Below are positions 13,407-64,000 of a stretch of 64,000 nt of DNA, piece by piece. How positions within the stretch are numbered: position 1 is the stretch's first letter; the number at the start of each line of letters is the position of its first letter. This DNA comes from Macrostomum hystrix (Eukaryota; Animalia; Platyhelminthes): assembly GCA_950097015.1 (NCBI GenBank), contig CATNEN010000011.1:4340001-4404000 (forward strand). The letters are read 5' to 3'. The translations under genes were made by a program, and so were the position numbers. The notes under the pieces were generated by a model that worked only from the letters and a program-made list of their open reading frames with translations, was not told the origin of the DNA and did not search any database.

Positions 13407-13513
13407 CCAGTGTGTACAGAATCCATCTGTTTCCGATGTCCAAAGTCCCCACCAACAGAATCCCCGCATATTTATTTAGTTACGACTCATACTGTGCTGG
13501 GCAAGTGCGTGAA

Positions 13514-24305: not shown

Positions 24306-24559
24306 CTAAAAAAGAGATGGCAGACAAAAGTTAGGAACACGATTAGTCAGATCGGAAAACTCAAAATCGCTGTATAGACATCGGAAAGGGACAATCACAG
24401 CACAAATTAAAACAAACCTTTCGTCCCAGTGCAACGAGATCTTCTGTTCATCGTGCAGCTGAAACGAGCAATCGAAAGGTAAATAGCGAAAAGCATAGCA
24501 CACTATCATACGAATCATCATCACGAAGCTCGAAAAAATACTAGAAAAACGACAGACAC

Positions 24560-34386: not shown

Positions 34387-34835
34387 AAACTTTCGAAGTC
34401 AACCATGTGACTCCTACTTTGGATACTTTCCAAGTACTTGAATGCAGATGAGGTCAACGCACTTTGTAAACTTTCGAAGTCAACCATGTGACTCCTACTT
34501 TGGATACTTTCCAAGTACTTGAATGCAGATGAGGTCAACGCACTTTGTAAACTTTCGAAGTCAACCATGTGACTCCTACTTTGGATACTTTCCAAGTACT
34601 TGAATGCAGATGAGGTCAACGCACTTTGTAAACTTTCGAAGTCAACCATGTGAACTTCTACTTTGGATACTTTCCAAGTTACTTTGAAAGTCTAGAGGCG
34701 CGGGTACATAGTAAACTTTGTAAGTCGAATCCAGTCAGGTAAAAACAAACCAAACTTTACAAGTTACCAGACACGTACTTTGAAAACTTGATAAGTCAAC
34801 CAAGTCATTTAAGTACAGTCTTGACTTGCCAAGTT
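34387..34835. repeat. E2 right subterminal array (81-bp unit, about 3.5 copies, plus dispersed motifs)
   Basis: Unit carries actttcgaagt and actttccaagt. Confidence 0.9.
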
Positions 34836-36451: not shown

Positions 36452-36978
36452 TAGGGTTGGCAGTCGGGGACTGGAATTCCCCGAAAAGTCGGGGATCCCC
36501 GATTTTTCCAGGTCCCCGATTCCCCGACTCCCCGATTTTTCCAGGTCCCCGATTCCCCGACTCCCCGATTTTGCCAAGTCCCCGATTCCCTGATTCCCCG
36601 ACTCCCCGATTTTTCCAGGTCCCCGATTCCCTGATTCCCCGACTCCCCGATTTTTCCAGGTCCCCGATTCCCCGACTCCCCGATTTTTCCAGGTCCCCGA
36701 TTCCCCGACTCCCCGATTTTGCCAAGTCCCCGATTCCCTGATTCCCCGACTCCCCGATTTTTCCAGGTCCCCGATTCCCTGATTCCCCGACTCCCCGATT
36801 TTTCAGGTCCCCGATTCCCTGATTCCCCGACTCCCCGATTTTTCCAGGTCCCCGATTCCCCGACTCCCCGATTTTGCCAAGTCCCCGATTCCCTGATTCC
36901 CCGACTCCCCGATTTCTCCAGGTTCCTGATACCCCGATTCCCCGAACCCCGAAAAAAATTCCCCGATTGCCAACCGTA
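36452..36978. mobile_element. hAT-type MITE filled with CCCCGA(T/C) tandem repeats
   Basis: TIR tagggttggcagtcgggga versus tacggttggcaatcgggga (17/19); 8-bp TSD ccagctac at 36444-36451 and 36979-36986. Confidence 0.9.
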
Positions 36979-39076
36979 CCAGCTACCAGTCTACCTAACA
37001 TGCGTTTATAGAGGAAATATAACAAACTCTGTTTCCTTAGGAAATGCGATAGCTTTACCTTCTGGTAAACCAGAAACAATAGTTCGAGAAACTGCATAAA
37101 TTCCTATATTAAGCAAACGCGAGGAATATGGATAACCATCTAACTTTTCTCTGAATATAAGTTGAGAACCAGTAAGTGCCATCTTTATGAATGGATTTAA
37201 TAAATATGTACTTATTATCAACAATCGCACAGTTATCAGGATAAGTGGTTTTGTAGGTGAAACGAGAGCAGCTTCGATTTGACAGAACATGTAAATCCCG
37301 CAGTAAAAGGGCTTGTCTACTAACATGGGAAAAACTACCACGGACCTGTCTCACTCGACGTTTTAGTGCACCCAAATAGTTTTCAAATGGAAAGGCGGAA
37401 AAAGAATCTAAGGGACCATATTGCTTAACAAAGTCAAATATATGCAAAATAGTATGAAAATTATATGAGACAGAATAGGAGCCAAACAACTCGGGAAGGT
37501 CGTAAACAAAAAGCCGAATAGAAGCTGCAGCTTGCTCATACAAATGCACCAGATTTTTTTAAGTAAAAGCATATATCGAAAAGCTTAAAAGCATAAAATG
37601 ACGAAAGTACCGTTCGGGCAGATAACTTTTAAATAAAAGAGGCCCTTAGTAAAGCAAAAGTGATCGAAACTTGGTGGCTTTGTAATGACCCAAGTCTTTG
37701 TCTAACCTCCTTGGAGGGCGGTGAAATTCGCATGGAAAGCACTTTCTATAAAATGAAATACTATCCGACAGTTTTAGAAGGTTGGCTACGGAAACCCTAC
37801 AGCGTAGACGAAAGGACTTTACTTTCTGAAAATACCACTGACACAATCGTTTTACAATTCCCAGGCAAATACAATGCATATAGTCAACAGGAAAATGAAG
37901 CAAAAGTGACACAATCTTAGCAATTGGTGATAACCTAGCCTGATTGTTCTCTTTACCCTCTGAGTATAAGCGGTCGTCGCGTGGGGTAGAAGCAGAGACA
38001 GGAAAAACCTTACGATCGTTCTCACGTTGAACTATACATCGATAATAACCACAACCATGAGCAGAAGTGTGACCGGAAATGCACTGTACAAATGCACGAG
38101 CTTGTGCGTCACAAATAAAAGTAAGATTTCCTAGTTTTACTAACTTACCCTCATACTGTATGCCGGTATCTCTCAATTGAATCATCTCATTGACAAAAGG
38201 TTCGAGATATTCATTTACATTAGGCTTCGTAAACCCATAGAACAACGCAACGGGCAGTATTACATTAGTACCATTAAAACGGACTAAAATGGGCCAAAGA
38301 GACGCATTACTGCTTTTATAAAGTGGTAAACCATCAATATTTATAGAACTATCAACAACAAAAACATTTGATTCCAAGCGACAGGAGTTAAGACTGAGGA
38401 GCCCCTTTTCAAAACAAAAAAATTGAATTCTCACGAATAGTCAAATAAGAAAATGTGCCTCCACACGTTAGTGTCGATGAGGGAGCCACCATTTTTGAAA
38501 CTCCCTTCATAAAAAGATAGTATGACTTCGGAACAGCAACTCCAACAAGACGCAACAGAAACTCAACGGCTGCGCGAGAAAGGTTAAACATGAGAAAAAA
38601 CATAATTAGCTCATTTACAAAATCGAACAGGGGCTCAGTAGCTGCTTCGTCAGCACCTTCGGCAGCATCAGGTTTGGCAGTCTCTTCGCCATCGGCCGAA
38701 CTATCCAATGAGTAGTAGCTGCAGCTAGAAGTCGCATTTGAATTTTCATCTGAGGAGATTGTCAAGACTCAAAGGAAGCTTCTTATAGCGAATATAACGA
38801 GTGTATTTGGGTTAAAGCCGCGCGTGCGAATAAGCCGTGTAGTCACTCTTACGTTTAGCTTGGGGGGGTAAAAGGGGTGCAACAGTTGAGGCGAAGCTTA
38901 GCTTAACGGGACCATAGACAGAAGAAGAAGAGAGAAGGCCGTTAGGGCCGGGCTGCTTTGACACTGCACAACATGTCTCCCTCCAGTCAAATGAAACAAA
39001 ACAACGAGCGCATGTGGCTATTTTTTTGTGGCTATGTTAGTCTTATCGGGAGGGCAACATATCAACCGTCACAGTG

Positions 39077-41010
39077 TCAGGGTGTGTATCGGTCTGGCTG
39101 TCGCCGATTTCGGTTACCCCTGCGCGGAACTTGATCTGCCACCGGAGCCGGTGGTGTCGGGGTTTCATTGGGAGGCATGTCTGCCGGCGGCTCCAGACTT
39201 TCGTCCTCGTCGTCCTCAGAAGTGCGTGAAAGCATCGGGGCAATCTGATTGTTGCTTGCCAGACGCAGTTTGTCGTCCGTCAGCAACCAGGATGTGTTGC
39301 GCCCTTGGGTCATGAGGAACTCTGCGCCTCGGGACGGGGTGTGGTCGGTGGCCTTGTATACGACCTGGTCACCTTGTTGGAAAGCCGAGACAACAGGTAC
39401 GCGAAGTCGTCGACCGAACACGAGCTCAGCCGGTGTCTTTGACCTTGCACCTGACGAGTTGCGGTGGTGAAGCAGAACCTTCTGCAAAAACGCAATGAAG
39501 TCAGAGTGGGTCAGTCTCTGTGTCCAGGCCTGCAGGGCCCTCTTGACAGTTTGGACTGCTCGCTCGGCCGCACCATTAGATTGTGGCGAGTAGGGAGGGG
39601 TTTCCATCTTTCGGGCGCCGTTGGCATGCAGCCAGGACAGCAGGGCATCAGACGTGAATTCCGGTCCGTTGTCGGAGACCACCACCTCTGGGACTCCAAA
39701 TCTCGTGAATACAGTACGTAACGAGCAAATAACCCTGTCTGCCGTCCTGTCGCGGGATGGAAAGGCTTCAATCCATCCGGAATAGGAATCCACTACAATG
39801 AGAATGTTGCCCACCTCGGGCACGAAGGCCCAGTCCATGTGGATGCGCTGAAATGGAGCATCAGCAGGTGGCCAAGCATCTCGGGACTTCTGCAGTCGGG
39901 GCCGCAGGCTGCTGCATGCAGCACACTGCCGCACGAATCGTTCCACGTCGCGCTGCATGCCGGGCCACCAGCAGGACAGCTCCAGGAGGTGGTAGCTGGC
40001 AGAAGTACCGCTATGAGTGTCGTGAATCGCATCGAAGGCCTCTTTCCGGAGACGCGGAGGTATGAATGCGCGCCGGTGCATGTAGAGGAGGCCGTTCTCG
40101 ATTGTTAGAGCTGCTGCGTTTCTCTTGAAAGCGGCCTCTGCTTGTGTGCAGTTATGCCAGTCGCCATTGCGTACGCGACGTATGATGCGCTGTAGCAGTG
40201 GATCAGAATCAAGTTCGCTAGCGATCCGTCGAGGATTGATAGTAGGGGATTCAAAGGCAACTGAGTTGATTGCCTCGAATGCGTCGGCCGGGTCTTGACT
40301 GTCATTATCAAACGGCAGACGAGAAAGCGCATCGGCATGCGGAATGCGCGATCCGGGAACGTAGACCACGCTAAAGTCTAATTGCATCAGGTAAAGGGCC
40401 CAACGACTGATTCTTGCCGATGAACTCATTGGTATGCTGCCACCGAAAAGCCGTAGAAGAGGCTGATGATCCGTCTGTACCGTAAATCGTCGGCCTTGGA
40501 GGTAGTGTTTCAGGCGACAGACGGCCCAGAAGATGGCGAGTGCTTCCCGTTCAATGTTGGAATAGTTAGTCTCGGCCTTGGACAGTGTCCTAGAGATAAA
40601 GATTACAGGGCGTCCTTCCTGGGTAACAACGCCTGCCAACGCTCCTTTAGAGGCATCTGTTGTGAGGGTCACCTCCTTCTCCAGGCTGTACGGTTGTACT
40701 ATTGGTCGTGATGAGATCTCCTTCTTGAGATTCTCGAAAGCGCGAGCACATGCTTCAGACCAGACAAACGGCGTGGATGCCTTGCGCAGTTCGTTCAATG
40801 GGGCGACCTTGGCGGAATAGTCAGGAATCAAGCGGCCGAAGAAATTCACCAGACCGAGAAATTGCTCGATCTCCTTCTTGGTCTTCGGTGTCGAGATGTG
40901 GCGAACTTTGTCCACGAGCTTATCATCGGGCCGAATTCCAGCGGCAGAAATTTCGAATCCAAGGAATGAAATCGAATCGCAAATGCCTGTACATTTGTCT
41001 TCATTAACCG
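39077..41010 (-). CDS. pol: G2 RT end, RNaseH and integrase (continuation after a 1-nt frameshift)
   Basis: FLGFEI, QFLGLVNFF, TDAS, IEREAL, TDH.PL, H..H...C..C, HMDW, VVDSYS, SDNG, SNGAAERAV. Confidence 0.9.
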
Positions 41011-42858
41011 TTACCTTTTTTCGGCCAGGCGCGTTTTGACTGCTTTCAGACGCTTCTGGAGTGCTTCAACGTTCTCAGCATAGACCATGATGTCGTCTTG
41101 ATAGATCAGTAGTCCCTTCAAGTCGGAGAGGATGCTCTCCATTGTGCGTTGAAAAATGAATGAAGCGTTTTTCATGCCCATCTGAAGGCGTTTGACGCGG
41201 TATAAGCCTCGCGAGGTATTGATGATAGAGATGCCTTGGGCGGATTCGTCCAGCTCGATCTGCCAGTAAGCCGACCTCAGATCAATCTTGGCAAACTTCT
41301 TGGCATTCTTTAACTTGCCAAAGAGGTGCTCGATGCTTGGAATAGGGTATGACTCTGGCTTTATTTTGTCGTTCACATGGACCTTGTAATCGGCGCACAT
41401 GCGCAACGTCCCGTCCTTCTTCTTGATCCAGACGACCGGAGAAGCGTTGCTCACAGGACCCTCCACAGGCTCGATGATGCCAAGCTGCTGCAGCCGGTCC
41501 AACTCTGCGTTGACTTGCTTCTCTAGTGCGATTGGAACCGGACGAGCACGGCAGAACTGGGATCGAGCGCCTTCAACCAGCTCCATCTGTGCCTTGATGC
41601 CCTTGATGGTGGGCAGCGTTGTAGCTGCAACTGTGGGGCTCGGAGCTTGAGAGTTGGTGTGAAAGAGAGAGTCGGAATCTAAAAGATCACGGCCAAGGAG
41701 GCCGAACGGCTTCAAAGACGAAACCACGACGAATTCGGCGGGGTGTAATCTACCCCGCATCTCGACGGTAGAGCACAGCTTGCCGAGAGTCTTTAGGGTG
41801 TGGCCGTCGTAGGCCTCGAGGCGTCGGTGACTCTTTTGCAGTGGGGGCCTGCCCAGAGACTCCCAGATTGTGCTAGAAAGCACGGAGACGGATGCACCGG
41901 TATCCACTTGCATTGGTACCTTGGCGCCGTCTACAAGAAGTGTCTCAGATGCAACTTCGATTGCGTTGACCAGATCAACGTCCATAAGATGCAGGATCTT
42001 CGAGGGCTCGGGCGTCATCGATGCATCGGATGGAACATCCGCGTGATGTACGGATTTGCTAGTCAGAGCAGAGCGGCATACGGCAGCAAAGTGGTTGCGC
42101 TTGGAGCACTTGGAACAGGTCTTGCCATATGCCGGGCACTTGCCTGCGTGATGGGATCCGCCACAGTACTTGCAGCCCTCGATGCGCTGACCATTGGAAG
42201 TTGGCCGTCCACCTTTGGAGTAGTGCACCGATTCGTCAGTGGCCGCATTATGTTGGGCTGGCGGCGACAATGGGCCAGCCGGGCCTACCGGGGGCACCGA
42301 GTTACAGGTTTGAACAAACGTGTTGATCTGTTCACAACTTCGAATGAGGTCAACAATCTCCGAGATTGTCTGATCCTTGGTTTGCATTGCACCGAGAATG
42401 CGCCGTTGATGCTCAGGGTTGTACAGTCCAGAAATGAGAGTAAGCCGCACCAGCTCCTCTGCGGGACTGGCGCAGTCCTTCAGAGAGTCAAAGGCGCAGT
42501 GCGTTGCTGCTTTCCTCAGGCGAGCTAAATAGTCTGCTATCGGCTCAGCAGCTTTCTGACGAATTGAGAAAAAGTCGGTTCTTTCGGCGACAATGAGGCG
42601 CTTCTGAGGTTGTAAGTAGGACACCAGGGCTGTCTCGATCTCTTGGAAGGTCAGCTTGTCGATCTCCTTCGGAGCGACGAGATGAGTCAGCTTCTCCAAA
42701 GCAGGCAGTCCGCAGGATGCCAAAAAATTGTCTGCGACTTGTCGGGATTCGGTCGAGTCGGTCCACTTCTTGGCGCGGGCCAGAGCATTGAAGGCCTTGA
42801 GCCACATCAGTGCACGGTCGGCATCGCCGAGAAAAAGGTCGCCAAGCCGCGACGCCAT
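41011..42858 (-). CDS. gag-pol: G2 Gag-protease-RT (N-terminal part of gag-pol)
   Basis: Tandem Cys/His knuckles CKYCGGSHHAGKC...CSKCSKRNHFAAVC, protease VDTGA, RT IDLRSAYWQ and YQDD. ATG at 42858. Confidence 0.9.
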   Translation of the reverse strand: MASRLGDLFLGDADRALMWLKAFNALARAKKWTDSTESRQVADNFLASCGLPALEKLTHLVAPKEIDKLTFQEIETALVSYLQPQKRLIVAERTDFFSIRQKAAEPIADYLARLRKAATHCAFDSLKDCASPAEELVRLTLISGLYNPEHQRRILGAMQTKDQTISEIVDLIRSCEQINTFVQTCNSVPPVGPAGPLSPPAQHNAATDESVHYSKGGRPTSNGQRIEGCKYCGGSHHAGKCPAYGKTCSKCSKRNHFAAVCRSALTSKSVHHADVPSDASMTPEPSKILHLMDVDLVNAIEVASETLLVDGAKVPMQVDTGASVSVLSSTIWESLGRPPLQKSHRRLEAYDGHTLKTLGKLCSTVEMRGRLHPAEFVVVSSLKPFGLLGRDLLDSDSLFHTNSQAPSPTVAATTLPTIKGIKAQMELVEGARSQFCRARPVPIALEKQVNAELDRLQQLGIIEPVEGPVSNASPVVWIKKKDGTLRMCADYKVHVNDKIKPESYPIPSIEHLFGKLKNAKKFAKIDLRSAYWQIELDESAQGISIINTSRGLYRVKRLQMGMKNASFIFQRTMESILSDLKGLLIYQDDIMVYAENVEALQKRLKAVKTRLAEKR

Positions 42859-43872
42859 TGTCAAGACTCAAAGGAAGCTTCTTATAGCGAATATAACGAG
42901 TGTATTTGGGTCAAAGCCGCGCGTGCGAATAAGCCGTGTAGTCACTCTTACGTTTAGCTTGGGGGGGTAAAAGGGGTGCAACAGTTGAGGCGAAGCTTAG
43001 CTTAACGGGACCATAGACAGAAGAAGAAGAGAGAAAGCCGTTAGGGCCGGGCTGCTTTGACACTGCACAACAGAGATATTGTCCTCCAAGTCAGATGCTC
43101 CTTGTTGATCAGCAACTCGATTAGCAGATGCTCCCTCTGGTGGAGAAGGCGTAGATTCCAATGAAGCACCTGAGTTAGCACCGATGGACACCAAGTTAGC
43201 GCCTGATTCATCAGCTGCAGCCTTGAGCAGTGCACTTCGCCTTTTTCGTTTAATTTGACTATATGGAAGACATCTGAAATTGTATGTACATGGCAGGTAA
43301 ATAATAAAACCTGGAAGCCCTATGTACTCCATAAAGGCTAAGAAACGTCCACGATGAGTTACAATTTAGGCATAGATGAACAGCACAAAATTACACAAAT
43401 GTGCTTATGCTCCTTACTGCTACATATGATAAATTTCATAACTTATAAAATGATTTGTCAACAAGTTTACATGACAGCAATGAACTTACACTAAGAATTA
43501 GATTGAACCCTTTAATTTTTTGCATTTTTAACAAAAAGCTGCACCCTTGAGCAGTGCATTTTTGCTTTATTAGACAATAGGAAAACGTCTACAATTGTTG
43601 TACATTGCAGATAAATAAAGAAAAACAATGAAGTCATATGTACTCCAGAAGGGCTTAAAACGTCCACTCCCTAGAAAAAAAAACAAGCTAAACTTTGTAA
43701 GTACTTACAAAGTAAACAATCAAAAGTCGTGACAAGTACCACCCAAGTGTACTAGGATGTTTTCATGGTTGACTTAGAAAGTAACCAAAGTTTGTTGCCA
43801 TGACTTACAAAGTTTACCATGTTTGACTGCCATGTACTTAGGTTGACTTGTAAAGTATATATTGTTTTCGTA

Positions 43873-44186
43873 AGACGACTTACAAAGTATGCAAAGTAGA
43901 CGTTGCATATACCTAGATGACTTACAAAGTATGCAAAGTAGACGATGCATATACCTAGATGACTTACAAAGTATGCAAAGTAGACGTTGCATATACCTAG
44001 ATGACTTACAAAGTATGCAAAGTAGACGTTGCATGTACCTAGTTGACTTACAAAGTATGCAAAGTAGACGATGCATGTACCTAGATGACTTACAAAGTAT
44101 GCAAAGTAGACGTTGCATGTTACCTAGTTGACTTACAAAGTATGCAAAGTAGACGATGTATATACCTAGATGACTTACAAAGTATT
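43873..44186. repeat. E4 left subterminal array, 42-bp unit, about 7.5 copies
   Basis: gacttacaaagtatgcaaagtagacgttgcatatacctagat. Confidence 0.92.
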
Positions 44187-44760
44187 CGTTACATTAGTTG
44201 GCTTACATTTGGCACATCACTGACGGAGCCCAGTAAAACTGCATTACAAGCAATTCTAAATAAAATAAGAAAATGTAGACCGGATAATTTTTCTGCTAGA
44301 AACGCAAAAGCTCGTGTTATCGAGAATGGAAGCAAAAAATACTTTATAACACATGATCGTCCTTATTCCAAAACTGTGTAACCTTTATTGAAAAAATTAT
44401 GTTCAGAATGTGGCAGAAGTTCTGCGGACAACTATCTATCTATCCAGGCACAAGCTAACAGCTGCTGTTGACAAGTTGACAACTGACAACGCCAGGGACA
44501 CCCAATTGCACAGGAAGCGAATAAGCAAAGAAAAGAAAATTGATATGAAGCATGTTGCACAGCATTTAATAAGAAAAGTAGCACAAACACTAGCTGCTAG
44601 CATATAGTTCAAAGGCATCTTTCTGTACAGGTCAAAGTCATTATCTACACGATATAAATCATCTACTACAACTCAATCAAAATTGTACAATTGCTAGCCT
44701 TCTTGTGGCCTGAAAAGATCGAAAGCCGCACAAAAGAATACCACTAAATGTGCAATTAAG

Positions 44761-44932
44761 GGGGGGATTCGCCGAATCCCGATTGGCCGAAGTCCCGACT
44801 CGCCGAAATCCCGATTTGCCTCCACACAACTCATCGGATTTCGGCTCCATACAACTCATCGGATTCGGCGAATCGGGATTTCGGCGAGTCGGGACTTCGG
44901 CCAATCGGGATTCGGCGAATTGGGATACACCC
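44761..44932. mobile_element. Palindromic MITE with 9-bp TSD (MULE-like)
   Basis: About 50-bp perfect inverted arms attcgccgaatcccgattggccgaagtcccgactcgccgaaatcccgat; gcaattaag at 44752-44760 and 44933-44941. Confidence 0.85.
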
Positions 44933-44944
44933 GCAATTAAGAAA

Positions 44945-47188
44945 CTAATCATGTTCGAAATCGTTTATCACGGGAATAGCAAAAGAGACGTCAGATAACC
45001 TTGTAGAAACTAAAACAAAGTGCTTTTGTAGGAGATCAACATTTACAGTGATGAAAAACCCAGAAGTTGATAACGAATAAATGGGACACATCTTTGTTAA
45101 AACGCCAACGACATCTTGGAATGGGACTTGCATTTCGCCAAAGCCAGCACGCAAACAAAAATCAATAGCACTTCGGTAAGCAAAGCACTCACAAAAATAT
45201 TTGTCATTGTGACGCAGGATTTTCTCGATCCGCAAAAGCATCTTCTTACAAGAGATGTCAGCCACCGCAAAGCAGCTAGCAGTTTGTCGATTGCTCTCAG
45301 CTCGTGCTGTTGTGAATGTTTTTCCGTTAACCGTGATTCGATTGCCTCGATGGTGCATCGAAGGAGCGGTCGGCTTGATGGCAGGACGCATTCGGCCAGC
45401 CAGCTTCCGTCTCAAGAAATTACGGATCATTATTTCAGCTTCGTTTCGCGTTCCGTGAATCTGCGAAACCAAACGGCCGAAGAAGCTTTCAAACAAAGCT
45501 GCAGAAGTACACCAGAGAGGCCCGTAAAGCTCTACTTGGGATGCGAGGTGTCGCAGTGCATGAATTGACATCGTACACGACTCTGTACCAAACCAGGCAG
45601 CAAGGCTAGCTTGAAAGCACTCAATCATACGTTCTGCCAAATTGAGATGTTCATAGGCAACACAGTCTGATGAAAGCAAATAGGTTGAGGTCGAAATGAG
45701 ACAGAATAAGAACATCAATCGCTTGGAAGCACCCGTAACCAACAGTAGCGGAAGAATGAAGTACAGAAGAGCATTCTTGAGCTCACTTGCTTTCCATCGA
45801 TTAAGATCTTCGAGCTTTCTTGGCTTTCTAGTGAAGCTTCGTGGCACCTTCACTTTCACGAGTTCTTCAGATACAGCTGTCTTATCTAGCAGCTTGTGCT
45901 TTATGCCGTAGTTAAGCAGTCGGCTTGTGACATTTATGTACACCAAATGCATCGCATCAAGTGGAGCCCCCTCAGGTACTCTGATCAACTCGGAAAGCAG
46001 TGTCGGACCTTTGACGCCTAGATGGGGCTTCTTTGGTTCCGCAATGATGGAATGCAGCTGATGAGTATGTGAATTCCGTAGAGGGCTTGGCTGCTCTAGG
46101 AACGGAAACGTCATCTTCCGGTACTCAAGCGAGTATACGCCTTCAATCTCACAGATAGTGCAGCCACGCTTGCCGTTAAAGTTTTGCATATTTAAAAATT
46201 CGGCCTTGGCAGGAAAATCTGCTACTAAAGCCAGAACACAAAATTGAACACTAAACGACTGGAGTTGGAATTGCAGCTTTGATGTATTTTCTATCAATAC
46301 CTGCAGAATCTCCTGGCCATCAGGCTTACATTCACCATAGTACACGGCAAGCAGAATAATGTTCTGCCATCGAAGACGGTCTCCTGGTGGAAGGTTGAGC
46401 ACTGCGAATGATACTGGCCATAGTTGACAACCTTTCGACTTTTGTGGAGTTGCAACACCATCAACATTCAACAGCACGTATAAAAACTTCGTGTCAGCTG
46501 TGTTCTCGTGCAAGCGAAATGCAGAGCCGCAAGTGATGTCTCGAAATTCCCCGTGTTGACGAACAGGCGCGAATTCGAACAATCTTGGGTATGTTTCGAG
46601 CAAAGTCTCTATCTGCAGCCTTGCATCTAACACGTAACAGGTCCCACCTGACACAGGCACCTCGATGGTTAGTTTGGCTTCTGCATTGCTTTCCTTGTTA
46701 AGGTCGTACAGTGTTGGACAACGATTGGGAATTGGCAGCACATCAGCAAACAACTGCAAAAACGTTTCTGCGGTGGCATCATCGACGCGGTGATCGGCTA
46801 CAGTGGAAATAAATCGCCTGCCAAATTCACCCACAGTAATCGCAGCGCTAGGATACAGGCTTTCAGACGACGAAAAGCTGGACTCTTGTGTAGAAACAGT
46901 TGCCTGCGGCTCGTCGAACGGAATGGGACTAGAACATCGGGCTTCCGACTGCAGTTGCTGTTCAAACTCAGATTCTGTTAGCAGAAACGGCGGATTTTGC
47001 TCCAATTCAGGTCCAGCAATGGTTGCAAGGCTCACTTCAGGTTCCTGCACTTCACTGGGACTGGGAGTCTTCCAAACGAGCGAATCTTCTGACAAAGGTG
47101 ACTCATGCGCAGAGCTGGGAGAAGCAGTCCTTTGTCGCTTTGAAGCTCGCTTTGCCGAATACGTGAGGCGCTGCTTCTTCTTTGGCAT
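44945..47188 (-). CDS. E4 CMC/EnSpm-type DDE transposase (747 aa from MPKKKQ)
   Basis: Uninterrupted ORF with LNVDG, LVADFPAK, C..C (GCTIC), PLDAMH, R.PR.L..L.RWKASE, H...HL..QV..YGPLW..SA..FES. The extra 105 codons upstream in the ORF track look like intron sequence. Confidence 0.9.
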   Translation of the reverse strand: MPKKKQRLTYSAKRASKRQRTASPSSAHESPLSEDSLVWKTPSPSEVQEPEVSLATIAGPELEQNPPFLLTESEFEQQLQSEARCSSPIPFDEPQATVSTQESSFSSSESLYPSAAITVGEFGRRFISTVADHRVDDATAETFLQLFADVLPIPNRCPTLYDLNKESNAEAKLTIEVPVSGGTCYVLDARLQIETLLETYPRLFEFAPVRQHGEFRDITCGSAFRLHENTADTKFLYVLLNVDGVATPQKSKGCQLWPVSFAVLNLPPGDRLRWQNIILLAVYYGECKPDGQEILQVLIENTSKLQFQLQSFSVQFCVLALVADFPAKAEFLNMQNFNGKRGCTICEIEGVYSLEYRKMTFPFLEQPSPLRNSHTHQLHSIIAEPKKPHLGVKGPTLLSELIRVPEGAPLDAMHLVYINVTSRLLNYGIKHKLLDKTAVSEELVKVKVPRSFTRKPRKLEDLNRWKASELKNALLYFILPLLLVTGASKRLMFLFCLISTSTYLLSSDCVAYEHLNLAERMIECFQASLAAWFGTESCTMSIHALRHLASQVELYGPLWCTSAALFESFFGRLVSQIHGTRNEAEIMIRNFLRRKLAGRMRPAIKPTAPSMHHRGNRITVNGKTFTTARAESNRQTASCFAVADISCKKMLLRIEKILRHNDKYFCECFAYRSAIDFCLRAGFGEMQVPFQDVVGVLTKMCPIYSLSTSGFFITVNVDLLQKHFVLVSTRLSDVSFAIPVINDFEHD

Positions 47189-47824
47189 AATTTGATGGGC
47201 TGGAAGTTCGGGGATAAAGCAGGAAAATTTTAGAATTAAAAGAAAAGAAACATAAAAGAAACTCCCACTCCCAATTAAATATTCATAGACTGTCAGGCTC
47301 CCATAGATTATACTTTGCATAAATGATTTTAGATTTTGACAATTATATAATGTCACCACTTTTACAAAAGGTGGAAAAGGAGTACAAATCCAAGTGAAAT
47401 CCAAGGGACAAGCTGCTGCACTCCTTCTGGCAACAAGCAGACAATCAATGCACAAAAAGATGGAAAATTGGCATGCTACTCTCCTGGTAACAAGCAGAGA
47501 CAAAATACATTTGACTACTATATACTAAAATATTTGAGCAGCTATTTAAAACATTACCCTTTAAATGTTGTAGAAAGAAATTTGCATGGCAGCTAGAATA
47601 TTTCTTTATTCAGAAAATATTATATAAATATATTAGTAAAGGTCTTTATATCACCTTTTTATTCCTACAGCTTTAAAGAAGCCACATTTAACTGTGCAAT
47701 ACAACCAAAAGACATCATAATATTCCCCCCATATTAAATTTGTGCCAAAATTCGCACTTAAGTCCAGCAAGCTATGCTAAAAGCTCCCATAAAAATGACA
47801 TGGAAATTTTTAAGGTCTTTCTAT

Positions 47825-48406
47825 GGGGCGAGGGGGGTCAGCGGCTAACGTCGCTGCCTCGCACTCCAAAGGACGCTAGTTCGATTCACCCTTCAGGTCA
47901 CGATTAATTTCGGTACTTGTTGGGGGGGGTTTGGACAGTAGCGACCGGCGGAGGTGCACCATATTTCGTGCAATCAAAGCTTGAAAAATAGCTTCGCTCC
48001 TACCTTCTGTGTGCCTGTTCTGCGTTGTTTGAGTTTGTGCGTTGGCGCTGGGGCGTTAGACCTTGCGGGGGGGTGGCTGGGGGGCGGGTGTACACCGCCG
48101 CGCGCTCATCTGGATTTCCGTCAGCGCGATTGGATAAAGTGTACACTCGTCACCCGCCCCCCCCTGAGGACTGATTTCTATCAGCCTTCCGCCCCGGCTT
48201 GGTCTGCTCTGTGCGTGTGCGGGCCTGGGGTGAGAGGCACTCCGGCTGCCGCCCCCTTCCCCGCTTGGCTTGCTGCTGTGTGTGTGAGGTGCCTGCTCAG
48301 GGGAGGCGGCGCGATGGGCGGCTTTCGCCTAGTTCGCCGGCCTGGGGGCATGCCGTTCCTGTGTTTGTGCGTCAAGTGCCCCAGGCCCCCCTGCAAAGTA
48401 AGTAAG
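47825..48406 (+). mobile_element. tRNA-derived SINE with (AAGT)n tail and 14-bp TSD
   Basis: taaggtctttctat at 47811-47824 and 48407-48420; head ggggtcagcggctaacg...tagttcgattc. Confidence 0.85.
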
Positions 48407-48611
48407 TAAGGTCTTTCTATTCTATTAAATGTTATTTTAGATCATATAGACTACAGAAAGGTCAATAAAAAGTAGTTGCCACACTAAGTTTTATACACAA
48501 AAGTAAGACACTTGATATCATTGTTGCATTGTCATTTAAATTACCATGGGAGTTGGTAAAATTGCATCAGTCTAATAGCAAAGCATGACAATAAGTCCGA
48601 AAATCAATTCT

Positions 48612-49631
48612 TCAAGTTCCAATGTTCTTGCGGCACCGAATTCCTCTGCGAATGTCGTTGCCAAGCTGATTGGCTGCATCTCGGGCAATGCTAACAGAAA
48701 CATCATCCTTGAGGAAGCGGCTGTTGACAGCTTTGAAAAACAAATTGCCTCGATTTGGTGACACCGAAGGGCGTGCTGTAGGCGTTTGCCTTTTGGTACC
48801 TACTCGGCAACTTTTAAGCTCATCATCTGTCCACAGATGGCGAGCTAGCAGAATTCCATATTCAGAAGGTGTAAGGTTGTTGTCCCCTAGCCTAGCTAGG
48901 TCAATATCATTGGCAAGCACTGGCACAATGTTCTCATTAGTTGCAACTTGGTGCTGGTTGGCAATTCCAGAGTGTCTACCAATTTCAGCAGACTTTCTTA
49001 GCCTTCTAGTTTCTCGCACTTGGGCCTCTAGAAGCTTCACAATTTGGCCATTCAAAAGGTTGGTCTTAGCAAGCCTTTTGTTGAGTTCCTTTAGCTGAAC
49101 AATTACTGGCACCTGAGCCTCAGACTGCATGCTTGACTCAACAACCGATACATTCCGATCTAGGTCCTCAGGGTCCTCATCCCCAGAATCATCAGCATGG
49201 GCTTCTTGTTCATCTTCACTGCTACTTGAAGATTTCTCAGCAGTTATAGCAGCAGAACCATTGGCAGCAGAATTTGCAATAGCATCAACATCACCAGTGC
49301 TATTTAGCAAAGATGAAAGATTAACACTTGATGTGTCCTGTCTACAACTAAGCTTGGACTCCAGTTGCCTCTTTGCTTGATCCAGGTCTCGTTCATTCGT
49401 GCTAGCAGCAACAACAGAACCAACATAATTGTTAGTTAGCTTGATAGTCGATTTCACATCAAGATTTCTAAGGTCGCAATTGCGCAAGCTAGCTGGCAAC
49501 AGATGGGATACAGATGACAATGTTGAGTAGGACTTATCTTCTTGAAAATATAATAAAACATATGAAACCATTGATGATTGCACTTCTGGTCTTCGGTCAA
49601 GAACCTTCTTGGTTCTTTTTGGCTCTTGCAT
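48612..49631 (-). CDS. E4 accessory protein, 339 aa: small N-terminal domain, acidic linker, coiled coil, C-terminal BEN domain
   Basis: C-terminal YGILLARHLWTDDELKSCRVG...PSVSPNRGNLFFKAVNSRF...SIARDAANQLGNDIRR fits the BEN pattern (L...LFT.EEL...LDP.....I...V...F......IN.KCR). Assigned by eye. Confidence 0.75.
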   Translation of the reverse strand: MQEPKRTKKVLDRRPEVQSSMVSYVLLYFQEDKSYSTLSSVSHLLPASLRNCDLRNLDVKSTIKLTNNYVGSVVAASTNERDLDQAKRQLESKLSCRQDTSSVNLSSLLNSTGDVDAIANSAANGSAAITAEKSSSSSEDEQEAHADDSGDEDPEDLDRNVSVVESSMQSEAQVPVIVQLKELNKRLAKTNLLNGQIVKLLEAQVRETRRLRKSAEIGRHSGIANQHQVATNENIVPVLANDIDLARLGDNNLTPSEYGILLARHLWTDDELKSCRVGTKRQTPTARPSVSPNRGNLFFKAVNSRFLKDDVSVSIARDAANQLGNDIRRGIRCRKNIGT

Positions 49632-51894
49632 TTCCTCAGAGACACTGAAATATAAGAAAATTAATTAGCCTGTTAAAATAAGTCCCATAACAAAGTAAAC
49701 AAAATATTTGCATTACTCATTAGCTAAACATGAAATATATATAACAAATTCATTGCCCTTGGCCTAACTTTGAATTGTTTCTGCATACCAAAATTTGTTT
49801 TTATGCTATAATTGTAATAGGAAAATAGAGTTAGGACCTACATTCTATTATGGATATAGTTTGATAATTAATATATGTAATAATAAACAGATTAAACAAT
49901 TAAACAATTATACATAGCACTGAAGCCTCGTGTTTCAATATAATAGGTAGTAATGAGCAATCCAATATAATATAGCACCAAACATGTTATTGTGGATATA
50001 GATGCCACTAGAGGAATTCCTCCAGATGACTCTCAAAGAGATCTGGGTAGGTCCCATGCATCTGGCAAAACTTGGCCTTTACATGTGCCCAGGTTCATTC
50101 TATAGGTTTCATTTAGGCCCCCTTGAGGCTTCATTATCTAACTCTTTAATTTGGTGTCTATCCAGCACAACTTCTAGAACCAAAATATACTTTATAGTTT
50201 GCACAAGTTACATAAATAACTTATGAATTTAGTGTTGTCTCTGGCACAACTTCAGGAACCAAAGAAAGACTTTTAAAGTTGCTACTTTTCATCTAAGAGT
50301 CATTAGAATTATTTAAAAATGAAAAAATATTAATGCAAATGAAACTTCACAATTGCCTAAAGTAGATATGACATTTATATCAAGGATAGATTTAAAGAGG
50401 GAGATACAAATGGTATCATCTTCCTAGCTAAGTTTTAATATTTTATAAAAAAGTATTTAATGACAATATAATACATTATACTAAGACAAAGCATCATCAT
50501 AAATATAAACATTATAATTTATAATTTATTTCTAATTGAGAAACTTATGAATTATACTATAGGGCTTCTATCTACCAAAGAAATTTTTAGACCCCAAGAA
50601 AAATTTACTGGATCTACACCTATGTGACATTTATCATTTGCAATTTACATTATGTAATATAATATAGGCCTAGGTCTATCCAATTTCAGAATGTGAATTT
50701 CAATGTCCAAATCACCAAATGCATTTTCCCAGTAATAAGCAAGCTAAAATCACAAAATCAGGTTGTGCATTTGCATCATAGGTTCAATTCCAGGATGCAT
50801 AAGCTCTATTCCATAGTTGTATTAGTTGGCATATAAGCACTGAGCACTCTAGACTAATCACACAAAAAGCACTGACTGGCTGACAACTAGGCCTAATTAT
50901 TTAAAGACTGAGGCAAAACTTAGAACTTAGACTTAGAGACATAGGGCGAACCATTATGAAAAAAATCATTGGGGTCTAACGAATTATCGCATGTCACACA
51001 ATTCTTAGTACGCTGGACAGCCGGCGTTGACATTGACATGCACCTAGCTCTCACAGGTCATACAAAACTAAAAGCGACAACACAACATGGCAATTCAGGC
51101 AATAGAGCAAGTAGACTTTGAAAGTAGAATTTGGCTCGTGCAAAAGGAGGCCATCAAAGGACTCAAGGAGTCAGTGCCAGTAAACCGGTAGTAGGCATTA
51201 GCAAGCCATTGAGGTATTGTTATTGTTATTGGCATCTATCAAGGAAGGAATCAACTTATAGTTATAAATCAAGACTTCACTTGGTCTTGGTTGTGAAAGC
51301 GAAAACTTTTTTAAAAAGGGAAGAGGAACAAGTAACACGCGAATTAACAAACTCCTATCTACGTTTTCTAAATTGCAGTCGCTACAAATGGAAAAAAACT
51401 GTTCCAAAACAAAGCACGTTTTGTTCTTTGTAAAACCTTATAGCTTAAAAAAGCATTTAACAATTTGATTTATTGTCGCTATGTCAACCGAAAGTTCGTC
51501 ATTTTAAGCGTAACTTTTTGCCAAATAAATTGCTTAACTAAAATGTAACTATAAAATTATACGTCAAGCCAGAAGAATGAGAATACTTGTTCTGGAACTT
51601 TTTAGTGCAATGATTGTGTTCATTCATATCTAACTATGGCTTCAAATCATTTTCTGAACATAAAAAGAGCATTTCGAATTTTTTGACGTATCTGTGACCC
51701 TATTTGCCTAAATGTTATGCGAGAAAATGCATGTAGTGACTTTTAGGTACAAAATTTTGTTATAATTCATGCAACAATGTGGGAAATTATATGGTAACAA
51801 TGTGGTATTGCCATTGTACGTATACAGTACATGTTCCAGTAAGCTGTTTATGGTATGGTCCACCTGTTTTAACTTTCAAAGTACATGTACATGT

Positions 51895-52810
51895 AGTAGA
51901 CGTAGACACCGACATTGTATGCTCTGTAAGCACTACAAAGTAGATGGCATGCGTCTACTTTGGATACTCTGAAAGTCAATCAAGTAGACACCGACATTTA
52001 CTTTGTAAGTGCTACAAAGTATATGACATGCATCTACTTTGGATACTTTGAAAGTCAAACCAAGTATAGTATAGTAGACACACCGAAATTATATATTTTG
52101 TAAGTACTACAAAGTAGATGGCATGCGTCTACTTTGGATACTTTGAAAGTCAAACCAAGTATAGTATAGTAGACACACCGACATTGTATATTTTGTAAGT
52201 ACTACAAAGTAGATGGCATGCGTCTACTTTGGATACTTTGAAAGTCAACCAAGTATAGTATAGTAGACACCGACATTGTATACTTTGTAAGTACTACAAA
52301 GTAGATGGCATGCGTCTACTTTGGATACTTTGAAAGTCAACCAAGTAGACACCAACATTTACTTTGTAAGTACTACAAAGTATATGACATGCATCTACTT
52401 TGGATACTTTGAAAGTCAAACCAAGTATAGTATAGTAGACACACCGACATTGTATATTTTGTAAGTACTACAAAGTAGATGACATGCGTCTACTTTGGAT
52501 ACTTTGAAAGTCAACCAAGTATAGTATAGTAGACACCGACATTGTATACTTTGTAAGTACTACAAAGTAGATGGCATGCGTCTACTTTGGATACTTTGAA
52601 AGTCAACCAAGTAGACACCAACATTGTATACTTGGCAAGTAACTTTAAAAGTACGCATGGAAGTCTACTTTGTAAACTTTGCAAGTCAAAGTAAGTAGGG
52701 CAGAAACATTGCATACTTTATAAGTACTTGATTGCAACATGCTATGTACTTGGTAAACTTTATAAGTCAACTATGTCATGAAAGTACCATGATTGACTTA
52801 CAAAGTTTAG
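51895..52810. repeat. E4 right subterminal array (82/92-bp dyad-symmetric units)
   Basis: actttgtaagt-actacaaagtaga-tggcatgcg-tctactttgg-atactttgaaagt; optional 10-bp gtatagtata insert. Confidence 0.92.
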
Positions 52811-53386
52811 CATGTTTTTTTTTCTAGGGCTATGAGTTACAATTTATGCATAGATGAACAGCACAAAAATATACAAATGTGTGTAAGCGCATTTTACTCA
52901 TCACTGCTAAGTAATGTGATGTGACTTCAGTTATTTAATAAGTTGCATAACTGAAGTGACAGCTTTAAGTTGCATATCTTATAAAATACTTTCTCAACAA
53001 GATTAACATGTCAGAAAGGTACACTAAGAATTGCATTGATACATTTTTATTAGTATTTAAAAAAAATAAACTAAAAAATACAGATTTAAGTTAAAACGTA
53101 GAGGTTGACTTGCTTTTGCCTTACCTTGTAAAATGAAATAGTTTCCTTAAATATATTAGTTCTTTGGAAGCAAACTATGAGCCTGTAAGTACACTTATAT
53201 ACATGATATTAGTATTCATGGATTTTGATTGTAATAAAATCACAACTAAGAAAATGCATTCCAAAAAACTTTTGAAGAAATGTAGCATAGTCAACCACTA
53301 CTAAAAATTGGTAAATGCTACACTCCCTGAAGATCAGTCAATTAAAAAGGTTGTAGCATTTCACAAGAAGAAACATTAACCATAGT

Positions 53387-54638
53387 CTATGATACAAGTT
53401 CGTCCAAACTGCGCTTTTGCCTCCGTTGCCGTCCTCCTTCCCTGTCTGAAGCATTCTTAAGAGCAGCCATGATACAGTTAGTAACTTCTTGATCTGTTGC
53501 TAAAGGGAAGGCTTTGCGTGCAGCTTGACGAACAACATCTTCAAGGGGACCCAAAAACCGACGTTTCTTATCTTTACCATGGCGATTGAATTGACATTGT
53601 AAGTCATTGGTCATCAAAGCAGAAATAGCTCCTTTAATAAAATTGCGAATGCTTTCACCACCAATAAGTGCAATTCTGTTGACAACCTTTTCTTGGTATG
53701 ATGCATCCTTCAGCTGGTCAATAAAACTGTCAAGACTTGGAACTGTCTTCTTTGGTGAAAAATCCATGCTATTGACTGCAGTCCTCGGCACAGAGTTAGA
53801 AGAAAAGCCTACAATTGAATTTTGGATGGCAACCAGGCGCTTGTAGCTCAATGCAGCAATATAGTATGCACCTTCAGCAGTAAAGGGCTCAAGGCCCTTT
53901 CTTCTGACTAAAGAATGAATTGGTTGGAGCTCTTCTTCACTAAGAGCTTGAAGCTCCTTTCTTGGCCTCTTGGGAACATAGCTTGCACTTGGAGAAGGCA
54001 TATCAATAATGGCAGTGCTCAACATAGGTGAGCTCAATGATTGGTATATATTTGCTTCTTGGCTTATGGACACTGATGACAGTTGCAGATGATGATTTAG
54101 TAGCAACTAAAGTAGGTTTAGAAAAAGTTGTAGGTTCAGAATTAGTAGGTTCAGAAAAAGTAATTGGAGTTGGAGGCAAAGTTGGCCTTGAAATAGGAAC
54201 ATGTTGTGTTGATAGATTATTTATTCCTGACTCACTATCACCATCCTCACTTGACTCAATTTCAGTTGTTTCATCTGCAGCAGAGTGGTACACATTCTCA
54301 CATGGCAATTGAATTCTTTTACCAGTACTAAAACGTGGAATACGCATTAGAATTTGTTGGATTGGAACATTTCTCCTTTTTACAGTAGTACAATGCTTGA
54401 ATGAAGCTTCTAGGGTCTCTTGACAAGTACCAAGTTGTACAACAATAGCTTTCAAAATAGATGAATCCCACTCAGTATCAAGAATAAGCTTTGCTGATGG
54501 ATCTCGAAGCAGTTGCTTAAACTTTTCTTCATTCCAATTTGTGTCTTTAAGGTTGTAAATACCAAAAGGTTGAAACTGACTCTCTTTATCAGATGGAAAA
54601 TAGAAGAGGCCAAACTTTACTTCACCATATTGCAACAT
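53387..54638 (-). pseudogene. E3 accessory DUF4806-type (BEN-like) gene with one frameshift near 54100
   Basis: C-terminal ...IGGESIRNFIKGAISALMTNDL...FN.HG...K..F...L..VV....A....I...LKNASDREGGRQRR is the DUF4806 pattern. N-terminus KFGLFYFPSDKE. Confidence 0.75.
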
Positions 54639-56178
54639 GACAACCTGCAATATGGAAACAATAGTTCATGAATATGATAAAATTATCAGATTTAAAAGTA
54701 GAACATAATTGTGTAGGTAGAAGCCAATAATAATTAAGACATTAATATGTATTACCAAATAGCACAGTTTTTAGACAGAAGTAAATCTATTAAAATGAAT
54801 ACTTCAAATGCATATTTTTAGTTCACATATCAATTATATACGAGCGTATAATAGTTTATATGACCAGCCGTCAAGAAGTAGACACATTATAGAAGTTGTT
54901 ATAACCAGAATTTTATCCAAATGCAAGAACTTCATGCGAGAATTTTTCAAGGCTTTGATGTTGCAATGCCTAATAGTATTATAGAATATAGTTTTGCCTA
55001 GACCAGTCTAGGGATTTAAGACTTTGCTATAGTGCAAGATTTGGACTAGGACCTATAAAGAAACTTGAATCTCCATTGCAACCAGGCATGCATTAAATAA
55101 CCATACATATAAAGCATAGTAAGCTACAAATAAAAACTAGGAACATGCTAGACTTCCACATCTGGCAAAACAGCACTCAGCATAGGCCCTATAACCATAA
55201 AAAAATGTGTAAACCATAATTCAATTAAGATGCTATGCTACAATCAGAAACCAAGAATAATAGAACCTCCAACAGCAGAAAGTATCAAATCGGCCAAATC
55301 GCATATGGCATAAGCTAGGGCCTAGGCCTTACCGCCTTACTAATTCCGTACAAAAGTAGATTGCTGAGACTTAGTAAGCTATTGTATTAACAGCCCAGTA
55401 AATAGTTCCACATAACACTCCATATCTTCAAAAGTTTAGTTTCACCCACCCTCAAGTCTTTCAAAAACGGTAGTACCACACGCTGTTTAAGGTAATAAAC
55501 TGGTAAAATAAAATGCAAAAATGCAGACAAAACGAACTCATGTATACGTTAATGACACGCGCAGACGCGAAAAGTCATTTAAAAATATACATTTTACACG
55601 ATTAAAAGTATCCAAATTTAATTTACATCAACAGAAAAGTAAAATGACTTAATACAAGATCAATCGATTATCAGTTCTCGCAAAATTAATTTTAAGCAAT
55701 TTTATTTTGTTAGTTTCGTTAGCTGCGGCAATCGGGCTAAAAGTAGCGGGACTGCCGCCACGGACTGCTACGCTCGCTGACAATAGTAGTAGTCAGCTAT
55801 CGCCGCAGTTTTGCCGAAAAAATTATTATTGATTTATTGGCTTAGAACGATCATAAATGCATCGATCATTTGTTCTTGAAGCTTAAATCGATTTTAAATT
55901 GCGATTTTGCAAGGTTAAAATTGAAATCGCAGAAGCAGCGACGGTAGCATTCGGCCCGCTGTCGGGCCGCCGAAACTTTTCCCAGCGGGTGTTTCTTTCC
56001 TGTCTTCGGCTTCGTGACTTCCGATGCTGCTTCCTCAGATGCTGTTTCTTCGGACTCGGACTCCTCAGGCTCGGACTCTTCAGATGCTGCTTCAGCCGTT
56101 GTCGCTAGTGTTGACACTGGTGCTGACATCTCAGCTGCTGATTCTGACACAACTGGAGTATTGACACTAACTAGTGCT

Positions 56179-57964: not shown

Positions 57965-58320
57965 CTTAAATCACTGAAACAAAGAACAAGAAGCAATGTT
58001 ACTGTGAAACAATATTTAAGGGATTCGTACATTGGTGAAGACGTCTTTTTGGTACGAATATTTTTGTCAGAGTATAGATTATACTTACAGTAAATTCGAC
58101 TCAGTTATATAACAGCATTAATAGTACACTAAAAAGAAGTAATTTAATAGATAACCCGGGAAAAAAAAACATTGTAAACTTTTAAAGTACTTGAAAAGTC
58201 GACATTGAAAAAGAATGGCAAGTATCAGTACTCATACTTTCCAAGTTTACAATGTTGTCGATCGTGGTAACTTTTGAAGTCATAAGAAATATTAGAAATA
58301 GGAATGAATGTTTCTTTCTC

Positions 58321-58957
58321 AGACTTTAAAAGTATGCTCTGCATGTATCCAAGTAACAGTGCTGACTTTCAAAGTATGCTCTACATGTATCCAAGTAACA
58401 GTGCTGACTTTCAAAGTATGCTCTACATGTATCCAAGTAACAGTGCTGACTTTCAAAGTATGCTCTACATGTATCCAAGTAACAGTGCTGACTTTCAAAG
58501 TATGCTCTACATGTATCCAAGTAACAGTGCTGACTTTCAAAGTATGCTCTACATGTATCCAAGTAACAGTGCTGACTTTCAAAGTATGCTCTACATGTAT
58601 CCAAGTAACAGTGCTGACTTTCAAAGTATGCTCTACATGTATCCAAGTAACAGTGCTGACTTTCAAAGTATGCTCTACATGTATCCAAGTAACAGTGCTG
58701 ACTTTCAAAGTATGCTCTACATGTATCTAAGTAACAGTGCTGACTTTCAAAGTATGCTCTACATGTATCCAAGTAACAGTGCTTACTTTCAAAGTATGCT
58801 CTACATGTATCCAAGTAACAGTGCTGACTTTCAAAGTATGCTCTACATGTATCCAAGTAACAGTGCTGACTTTCAAAGTATGCTCTACATGTATCCAAGT
58901 AACAGTGCTGACTTTCAAAGTATGCTCTACATGTATCCAAGTAACAGTGCTGACTTT
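58321..58957. repeat. E5 left subterminal array, 42-bp unit, about 15 near-identical copies
   Basis: actttcaaagtatgctctacatgtatccaagtaacagtgctg. Confidence 0.95.
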
Positions 58958-58960
58958 TAC

Positions 58961-63979: not shown

Positions 63980-64000
63980 GTTTATAGCATCCCGAGCAGC
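63908..64000 (-). CDS. C-terminal end of the E5 BEN accessory gene
   Basis: AARDAINQLGNDLRRGIRSRKDDFQIPSIG* matches the E4 and E2 endings (IARDAANQLGNDIRRG, AREAANQLGNDLKRG). Confidence 0.85.
   Translation of the reverse strand, partial: AARDAINQLGNDLRRGIRSRKDDFQIPSIG

Follow-up and report, generated by a model that had tools for sequence, protein, structure and literature searches.

The 64,000-nucleotide (nt) stretch of Macrostomum hystrix DNA analysed here (contig CATNEN010000011.1; the whole stretch is called the window below) is eukaryotic and rich in mobile elements. At 43669-52829 on its minus strand it carries a 9.2-kb cut-and-paste transposon, E4, which is complete in structure and belongs to the Mirage branch of the CMC (CACTA-Mirage-Chapaev) superfamily. 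E4 has two genes, both on the minus strand, and both of its ends and both open reading frames (ORFs) are intact: the downstream gene encodes a transposase and the upstream one a protein, ORF2, the C-terminus of which is modelled with the fold of a BEN domain. The palindrome ACTT-N3-AAGT is a conserved end feature of the family to which E4 belongs, and it is found also in the relatives on two public contigs, L002 and L012. With moderate confidence we propose that ORF2 dimers seated on these palindromes (dyads) pair the two ends of the element and bring in the transposase.

Followed along the minus strand from its right end, E4 consists of dyad repeats, 2.3 kb without conserved coding sequence, ORF2, a 1.4-kb spacer and the transposase; downstream of the transposase come a hairpin at 44767-44920, an array of 42-bp units and dispersed dyads which extend to the left end (coordinates of the parts are collected in Table 1). 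The inverted ends read CCCTAGAAAAAAAAACA(A/T)GCTAAACTTTGTAAGT. In the left terminal inverted repeat (TIR) the sequence CCCTAG-A9-CAAGCTAA is followed by the first ACTT-N3-AAGT dyad at nt 24-34, and in the right TIR the dyad is likewise at nt 24-34 counted from the terminus. Every 42-bp unit holds one dyad and one additional AAAGTA half-site, every 79-95-bp unit of the right-end array holds two to three dyads, and the dispersed dyads of the right end are spaced 34-42 bp.

The layout of ORF2 comprises a conserved N-terminal module, a disordered, acidic and Ser-rich linker, a long helix, the C-terminal BEN domain and a basic tail. Invariant in the family are R, N, D and R of the segment ...RF...NQLG.D..RG.R.R. 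A profile of its C-terminal half collected 100 relatives among 1.84 billion representative proteins, most of them 280-360 amino acids long and matched in their C-terminal portion. The structure of the C-terminus was modelled from an alignment of 55 family members, with a predicted local distance difference test score (pLDDT) of 90.8 and a predicted template modelling score (pTM) of 0.83. The first-pass annotation had described 48612-49631 as BEN-like, and a Foldseek comparison of this model with the PDB agrees: the top 16 chains are all BEN domains (from BEND6, BANP, Bsg25A, Insv, BEND3 and NACC1), with probabilities of 0.41-1.00 (above 0.5 in the first 15) and template modelling (TM) scores of 0.42-0.63, while the next chain has a probability of 0.10. 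When the model was aligned by VIA-align, twelve BEN entries gave Z values of 6.1-7.9 over 84-100 residues, against 3.6 for the best unrelated chain. Additionally, a VIA-align scan of 48,161 PDB representatives, made independently of Foldseek, placed BEN entries in all of the top five ranks (Z 7.5, 7.5, 7.5, 7.1 and 5.2, over 79-100 aligned residues) with the next chain at 4.6. By absolute standards such Z values are moderate.

A bridge at the level of sequence is offered by the relative P0072, which matches the ORF2-family profile at 8.9e-7 and the Pfam BEN family with 35.5 bits (cut-off 23.2). Furthermore, weak Pfam BEN hits (E up to 1) were obtained for 11 of the 55 family members, the next commonest family being hit in 3, and a language-model search with the C-terminal 115 residues of ORF2 led to BEN clusters (score 0.94, 205 of 256 features shared). 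A phmmer search of ORF2 against the PDB gave no match, and a family search with the N-terminal module gave no assignment. Since the top ranks are exclusively BEN, the whole domain is covered and P0072 links the two families by sequence, we regard the predicted BEN fold of ORF2 as settled. An earlier model built from four sequences only (pLDDT 70, best Foldseek E 3.0) was superseded by the 55-sequence rebuild; residues 2-34 of that first model form the 33-residue helix just ahead of the BEN domain (pLDDT 74-84), and this region lies within most of the family hits. ORF2 presumably dimerises through this helix.

The arrangement of a BEN gene followed by a transposase gene is not restricted to E4. 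It was met on three unrelated public contigs: at L002/L003, a 7.9-kb contig containing the whole element, the ORF2 relative P0003 precedes a 746-amino-acid DUF1258 protein; on the marine metagenome contig L004, P0004 precedes a transposase fragment; and on L012, P0026 precedes a 762-amino-acid DUF1258 protein. On a fourth contig, L007, the BEN protein and the transposase are both distant, P0072 with its Pfam-grade BEN domain being followed by a distant Transposase_21-like gene. Identities of the BEN protein and of the transposase are 47 and 45% between L002 and L004, 35 and 40% between E4 and L002, and 30 and 34% between E4 and L012; thus among the four close-family pairs (E4, L002, L004, L012) the one tracks the other, and both are lowest against L007. 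Because the two proteins diverge in parallel, a long co-inheritance is indicated and not a recent capture. In the window itself a BEN-like gene upstream of a co-oriented transposase had been claimed for E4 and for two further elements, E2 and E5, and this was borne out, with the qualification that in E2 the BEN gene is frameshifted and the transposase a fragment, and that of the BEN gene of E5 the window contains the last 21 codons. A third conserved coding region was not detected in the spacers when E4 was compared by tblastx with L002, E5 and E2. The word-indexed protein search retrieved only one relative of ORF2 and four of the transposase, and a metagenome scan with the transposase alignment gave no match.

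The palindrome occurs 72 times in the window where 1.89 matches are expected and where the maximum of 100 shuffles was 5; many of the 72 are tandem copies. The earlier claim that the arrays of E1, E2, E4 and E5 keep ACTT-N3-AAGT in units that otherwise differ stands, and dyads are present outside the arrays too (43692-43856, 52630-52806, 34681-34834 and 58178-58280). Among 2304 four-base dyads with spacers of 0-8 nt it ranks first, with 71 copies across the seven ends tested, and the only other dyad present in all seven, TACT-N5-AGTA, overlaps it and has 16 copies. The hexamer AAAGTA/TACTTT is commoner than the full dyad (97 copies in the seven ends), so the recognition unit is probably a half-site close to AAAGTA, which is often but not always paired as a dyad.

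The position of the dyad is kept as well as its sequence. L002 has 4 dyads where 0.31 are expected, none of them more than 150 nt from a terminus. Of the 13 dyads of L012 (0.35 expected), 12 are no further than 280 nt from the ends of the contig, and these coincide with the ends of the element. The first dyad lies at nt 24-34 from the terminal C in the left ends of E5, L002 and L012 and in the right end of L012, as it does in both ends of E4, and at nt 23-33 in both ends of E2; altogether 8 of 11 ends have the dyad at one of these two positions, and the remaining 3 have a one-mismatch dyad at the same place. In several ends a second dyad follows exactly 11 bp further inward, and each end of E4 has 12 to 17 further dyads within the next 0.5-1 kb, with fewer in L002 and L012. 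The 17 nt which separate the CCC hexamer from the first dyad vary between elements, and blastn found no alignable end DNA between E4 and L002. Since the end DNA of these two is beyond alignment, it is selection and not recency that has kept the dyad and the spacing between it and the cut site. The array units differ in length (42, 53, 81 and 79-95 bp) and the dyad is present in every type, so that the arrays look like the product of repeated, independent amplification of site-bearing units.

The class of the transposase was examined by family searches, motifs and termini. Pfam DUF1258 (PF06869) was matched by the E4 transposase at 4.8e-10 with 39.8 bits and by that of E5 with 44.8 bits, both above the curated cut-off of 33.1, while Transposase_21 (tnp2) was matched by E4 at 2.3e-5 with 24.1 bits and by E5 with 17.1 bits, both below the cut-off of 28.6. 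In the alignment of the E4, E5, L002 and L004 transposases the motifs NVDG, ADFPAKA, C(2)C (GCTIC), H(3)H (HALRH) and LFESFF are conserved. The same arrangement has been stated for the CMC clade (PMC12730594), and the motifs by which the superfamily is recognised are present in E4, E5 and L002; DUF1258 in turn corresponds to the Mirage group (PMC3985635). The target-site duplication (TSD) is 2 bp in three of three complete copies (CT in E4, AT in E2 and TA in L002), and a reading of 3 bp fails in all three alike. A 2-bp duplication is what the Repbase definition of Mirage prescribes. The termini are CCC(G/T)(A/G)G, so that the element reads CCC...GGG. Because of the DUF1258 match above the cut-off, the 2-bp duplications and the CCC termini, Mirage-like is a better label than EnSpm. 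Of the assignment CMC/EnSpm given in the first-pass annotation the first half was retained, on the strength of the motifs and DUF1258, and the second was dropped: EnSpm/CACTA proper is ruled out by the non-CACTA termini, the 2-bp duplications and the subthreshold Transposase_21 match, and the accessory protein, instead of being homologous to TnpA, has the predicted BEN fold.

In the mechanism which we propose, the DDE transposase would cut at the CCC...GGG termini and make the 2-bp target duplications, and ORF2 would be the sequence-specific end-binding factor of the element. ORF2 would probably dimerise via its helix, one dimer occupying one ACTT-N3-AAGT dyad with a half-site of about AAAGTA, and such dimers would cover the dyads, those 23 nt from either terminus among them. 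The bound BEN protein would then mark and pair both ends and recruit the transposase, a role like that of TnpA in maize En/Spm and of the Myb-like protein in PIF/Harbinger. Short palindromes are bound by homodimers of BEN-solo proteins (PMC4281564), and the layout of ORF2 matches that of these proteins. Binding of the dyads by the BEN protein, and promotion of transposition by this binding, are candidate roles.

Several points weigh against this proposal. Pfam assigned no family to E4 ORF2 itself at E up to 1, BEN (PF10523) included, and no BEN chain was found by sequence when ORF2-family profiles were run against the PDB sequences. As to expression of ORF2 and the transposase, no run recorded as RNA holds the stretch, and two runs possibly of RNA cover scraps of it and an inserted repeat in the E4 spacer. 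L007 contains one internal ACTT-N3-AAGT match and 17 same-strand copies of TGAAAGCAGGATNCCGAT, which are placed in an upstream array of 200-bp units and directly ahead of each gene; this is promoter-like, unlike the terminal dyads of E4, and the layout suggests control of promoters more than binding of ends. At L007, and at L013, L014 and L015, where the DUF1258 transposases are distant and the family BEN profile is not matched, the motifs differ in the direction predicted for a pairing of BEN protein and motif. However, these loci are phylogenetically distant in both proteins, so the BEN protein and the transposase are not separated by this comparison, and differing motifs are expected there under any model. 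Since the BEN protein and the transposase are always co-inherited, the co-occurrence of gene and dyad is explained just as well if the transposase is the binder. Finally, a dyad inside the TIR is at the usual site of transposase self-binding, and the transposase has a conserved segment (about residues 85-170) of unassigned fold which might act as a DNA-binding domain.

The last points lead to the alternative that survives best, namely that the transposase itself recognises the dyads through its conserved N-proximal region while the BEN protein does targeting, chromatin interaction or host-factor recruitment. We consider it possible, although clearly less probable than binding by ORF2. Most DDE transposases bind by themselves at sites inside the terminal inverted repeats, and those of Ac, the P element and Hermes bind their own subterminal repeats. 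Transposase binding would suit the position of the first dyad, which is within the TIR at a fixed 23 nt from the cut site, as well as the segment just named, which stands ahead of the catalytic core in all four aligned transposases, and the co-occurrence data are compatible with either protein. On the other hand, neither Pfam nor family-assignment searches detected a known DNA-binding family in the first 200 residues, and the first ~80 residues, basic or acidic and of low complexity, are unconserved in the alignment of E4, E5, L002 and L004. If the transposase were the binder, the maintenance of a dedicated protein with a palindrome-binding fold would need another explanation.

A second alternative accepts that the BEN protein binds the dyads and sees it as a brake, a repressor or copy-number regulator which shuts promoters or blocks the ends; we hold this to be unlikely. 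The BEN-solo proteins characterised so far act as repressors of transcription and as insulator factors (PMC4281564), and the repeated L007 sequence, all copies of which share a strand and which immediately precedes each gene, would be in line with such a function. However, the dyads of E4, E2, E5, L002 and L012 cluster at the termini in both orientations and not before the genes, only two of them are found in the 2.3 kb that precede ORF2, and a protein that did nothing but repress would be less likely to stay intact over the divergence observed. It should be added that TnpA of En/Spm combines the roles of cofactor and repressor, so that end recognition by ORF2 and repression are not exclusive. 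A third reading, in which the element has picked up a host transcription-factor gene as a passenger without a role in its life cycle and the palindrome is merely inherited end sequence, is very improbable: DNA transposons do capture host genes, but here the gene is intact, with its position and orientation kept, in elements the transposases of which are only 34-47% identical, the two diverge in step, the domain layout is common to a hundred relatives, and the dyad position is fixed though the end sequence around it can no longer be aligned.

Comparison with known systems places the proposed role of ORF2 among described ones. In maize En/Spm the transposase TnpD acts together with TnpA, which binds subterminal repeats and, as has been proposed, brings the ends together and assists the transposase. 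E4 shares with it the CMC superfamily, the two proteins and the many short motifs in both orientations over several hundred bp of each end. It differs in that its accessory protein, encoded by a separate upstream ORF with no sign found of a single transcript spliced in alternative ways, is predicted to have a BEN fold unrelated to TnpA, and in its CCC instead of CACTA termini, its duplication of 2 instead of 3 bp and its transposase, which is closer to DUF1258 than to Transposase_21. In PIF/Harbinger a Myb/SANT-domain protein recognises subterminal sites and recruits a DDE transposase that has no end-binding domain of its own. With its DDE transposase and separately encoded DNA-binding protein, for which a dyad-binding role is predicted in E4, our element is akin to this system, the two-protein layout of which has been described (PMC12730594), whereas the transposase superfamily, the DNA-binding fold, the TSD and the termini are different.

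Mirage transposons, defined by DUF1258, were first described in nematodes. E4 and E5 are like them in the DUF1258 match and E4 in its 2-bp duplication; in the literature searched, neither a BEN-type second gene nor ACTT-N3-AAGT end arrays have been reported for Mirage. The DUF1258 transposases of L013, L014 and L015 (28-32% identical) differ from E4 in that no match to the ORF2-family BEN profile and no copy of ACTT-N3-AAGT was found in these contigs (0 copies in 25.7 kb). L015 carries a Mirage-like element with an 865-amino-acid transposase, TTGAGAA/TTCTCAA repeats at both contig ends (1-131 and 7511-7657) and, upstream of the transposase, several small ORFs on the opposite strand. On L007, a 297-kb contig, two BEN-like ORFs and the Transposase_21-like gene occupy 6590-14279.

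With the BEN-solo proteins (Insensitive and Elba1/2 of Drosophila, BEND5/6 of vertebrates) ORF2 has in common a single C-terminal BEN domain, as modelled, and no other known domain, and the structures of BEND6, Bsg25A and Insv are among its best fold matches. The BEN-solo proteins are host genes regulating transcription and insulation, while ORF2 is inside a mobile element beside a transposase; identity in the structural alignments is just 9-16%, and the proposed ORF2 site (4+3+4, AT-rich) differs from CCAATTGG.

In the full-text literature searched, which comprises about 8.4 million papers and leaves subscription journals and Repbase Reports outside its coverage, no BEN protein encoded by a eukaryotic DNA transposon was found, and provisionally we regard the pairing of BEN protein and transposase as not described before. 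DNA transposons with two proteins are already known, En/Spm with TnpA and Harbinger with its Myb-like protein. If the BEN protein is the end-binding subunit, it would add a third, unrelated fold to the separately encoded DNA-binding partners of transposons, and it would be a BEN protein with its candidate site written dozens of times beside its own gene. It would also give the poorly characterised Mirage group a mechanistic footing, and an animal family of transcription and insulator factors, of unexplained ancestry, a plausible origin in mobile elements. The THAP, BED, CENP-B and Harbinger-Myb factors descend from transposon proteins. As a tentative and rather doubtful extension, animal Mirage-like transposons in general might use BEN end-recognition subunits, with subfamilies having their own sites, and the host BEN-solo factors with a helix and a C-terminal BEN domain (Insensitive, BEND5/6) might descend from them; if so, diverged BEN proteins paired with different repeated sites would be a natural look-up table of BEN specificity.

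Table 1. Parts of E4 and related elements in the window (strand in brackets)
Feature	Position	Description
E4 terminal inverted repeats	left 43669-43702 (+), right 52796-52829 (-)	34 nt, one mismatch, 97% complementary
E4 target-site duplication	left copy 43667-43668, right copy 52830-52831	CT, 2 bp
E4 left subterminal region	43703-44185	four dispersed dyads, then 42-bp array 43873-44185, 7.4 copies
E4 right subterminal region	51872-52795	~0.95 kb; array 51902-52728 of 79-95-bp units, then five dispersed dyads
Transposase	44945-47188 (-)	747 amino acids from first Met; ORF 44945-47503 (-)
ORF2	48612-49631 (-)	339 amino acids
BEN domain of ORF2 (predicted)	48624-48953 (-)	~residues 227-336; fold model, two PDB structure searches, family hidden Markov model match
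Long helix of ORF2	48978-49076 (-)	~residues 186-218, just ahead of BEN domain; candidate dimerising coiled coil
Short interspersed nuclear element (SINE) insertion	47826-48409 (+)	in the ORF2-transposase spacer of E4; tRNA-like head, (GTAA)n tail
E1	25131-25551 (+)	isolated left end, CCCGAG terminus, dyads; homology ends at 25551
E2	30316-34856 (-)	internally deleted relative of E4; inverted ends, AT duplication
E5	58155-64000 (-)	left end within the window; element continues past window edge

E4 had been put forward as a complete, testable example of such elements; its frames, ends and duplication are indeed intact, but a SINE has entered the spacer between its genes. The SINE is on the strand opposite to the E4 genes, with an 11-bp duplication, GGTCTTTCTAT. 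Contig depth at this piece is ~500 (up to 510) against ~4.5 over the remaining E4; the nested insertion and this depth indicate a high-copy family which arrived later than E4. The hairpin, directly 3' of the transposase stop, has 54-nt arms (98% complementary), a 46-nt loop and 16-nt CGGCGAATCCCGATT-type repeats, which are similar to the CCCCGAT arrays at 36496-36952. The hairpin may serve as a terminator or as a site for the protein of another element, or may itself be a small nested element.

Three further members of the family are in the window. E2 contains a transposase fragment (30292-30816), an ORF2 relative spread over three frames (31555-32503) and an 81-bp dyad array (34387-34684). 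E5 has a 42-bp dyad array (58322-58957), its transposase (60026-62278) is 47% identical to that of E4, and the end of its ORF2 relative is at 63935-63997, at the window edge; in both elements the ORF2 relative is upstream of and co-oriented with the transposase or its fragment. The array of E1 (25295-25551) has units of 42, 53 and 95 bp. The terminus of E1 (25131-25160, CCCGAGAAAAAATATTATGATAAAC) is nearly identical to that of L002 (58-82), a metagenome contig, so the L002 sample probably contained DNA of this animal or of a close relative. Just outside E1, at 24553-24858, there is a degenerate array of ATGCCAGACAC-type units with periods of 11 to 62.

E3 (36432-38440) is the remnant of a different, distant CMC element, with transposase pieces at 37112-37558 and 37649-38440 which are 25% identical to the E4 transposase. 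Its arrays consist of 33-, 41- and 74-bp units of the TCCCCGATT type, and neither ACTT dyads nor an ORF2-family BEN match was found in it; the remnant ends near a long terminal repeat (LTR) retroelement starting at 39077. Two LTR-retrotransposon pol regions with protease, reverse transcriptase, RNase H and integrase lie on the minus strand, one between E1 and E2 (26698-30047) and the other between E3 and E4 (39077-42864). Between E4 and E5, two overlapping minus-strand ORFs of 239 and 215 amino acids (53387-54650) matched neither a Pfam family nor the BEN-family profile; their C-terminal part has the basic tail GGRQRRQKR. At 1647-2978 on the plus strand an ORF encodes a PDZ domain (2e-11) and, after it, long CAG/glutamine repeats; it is probably a host exon.

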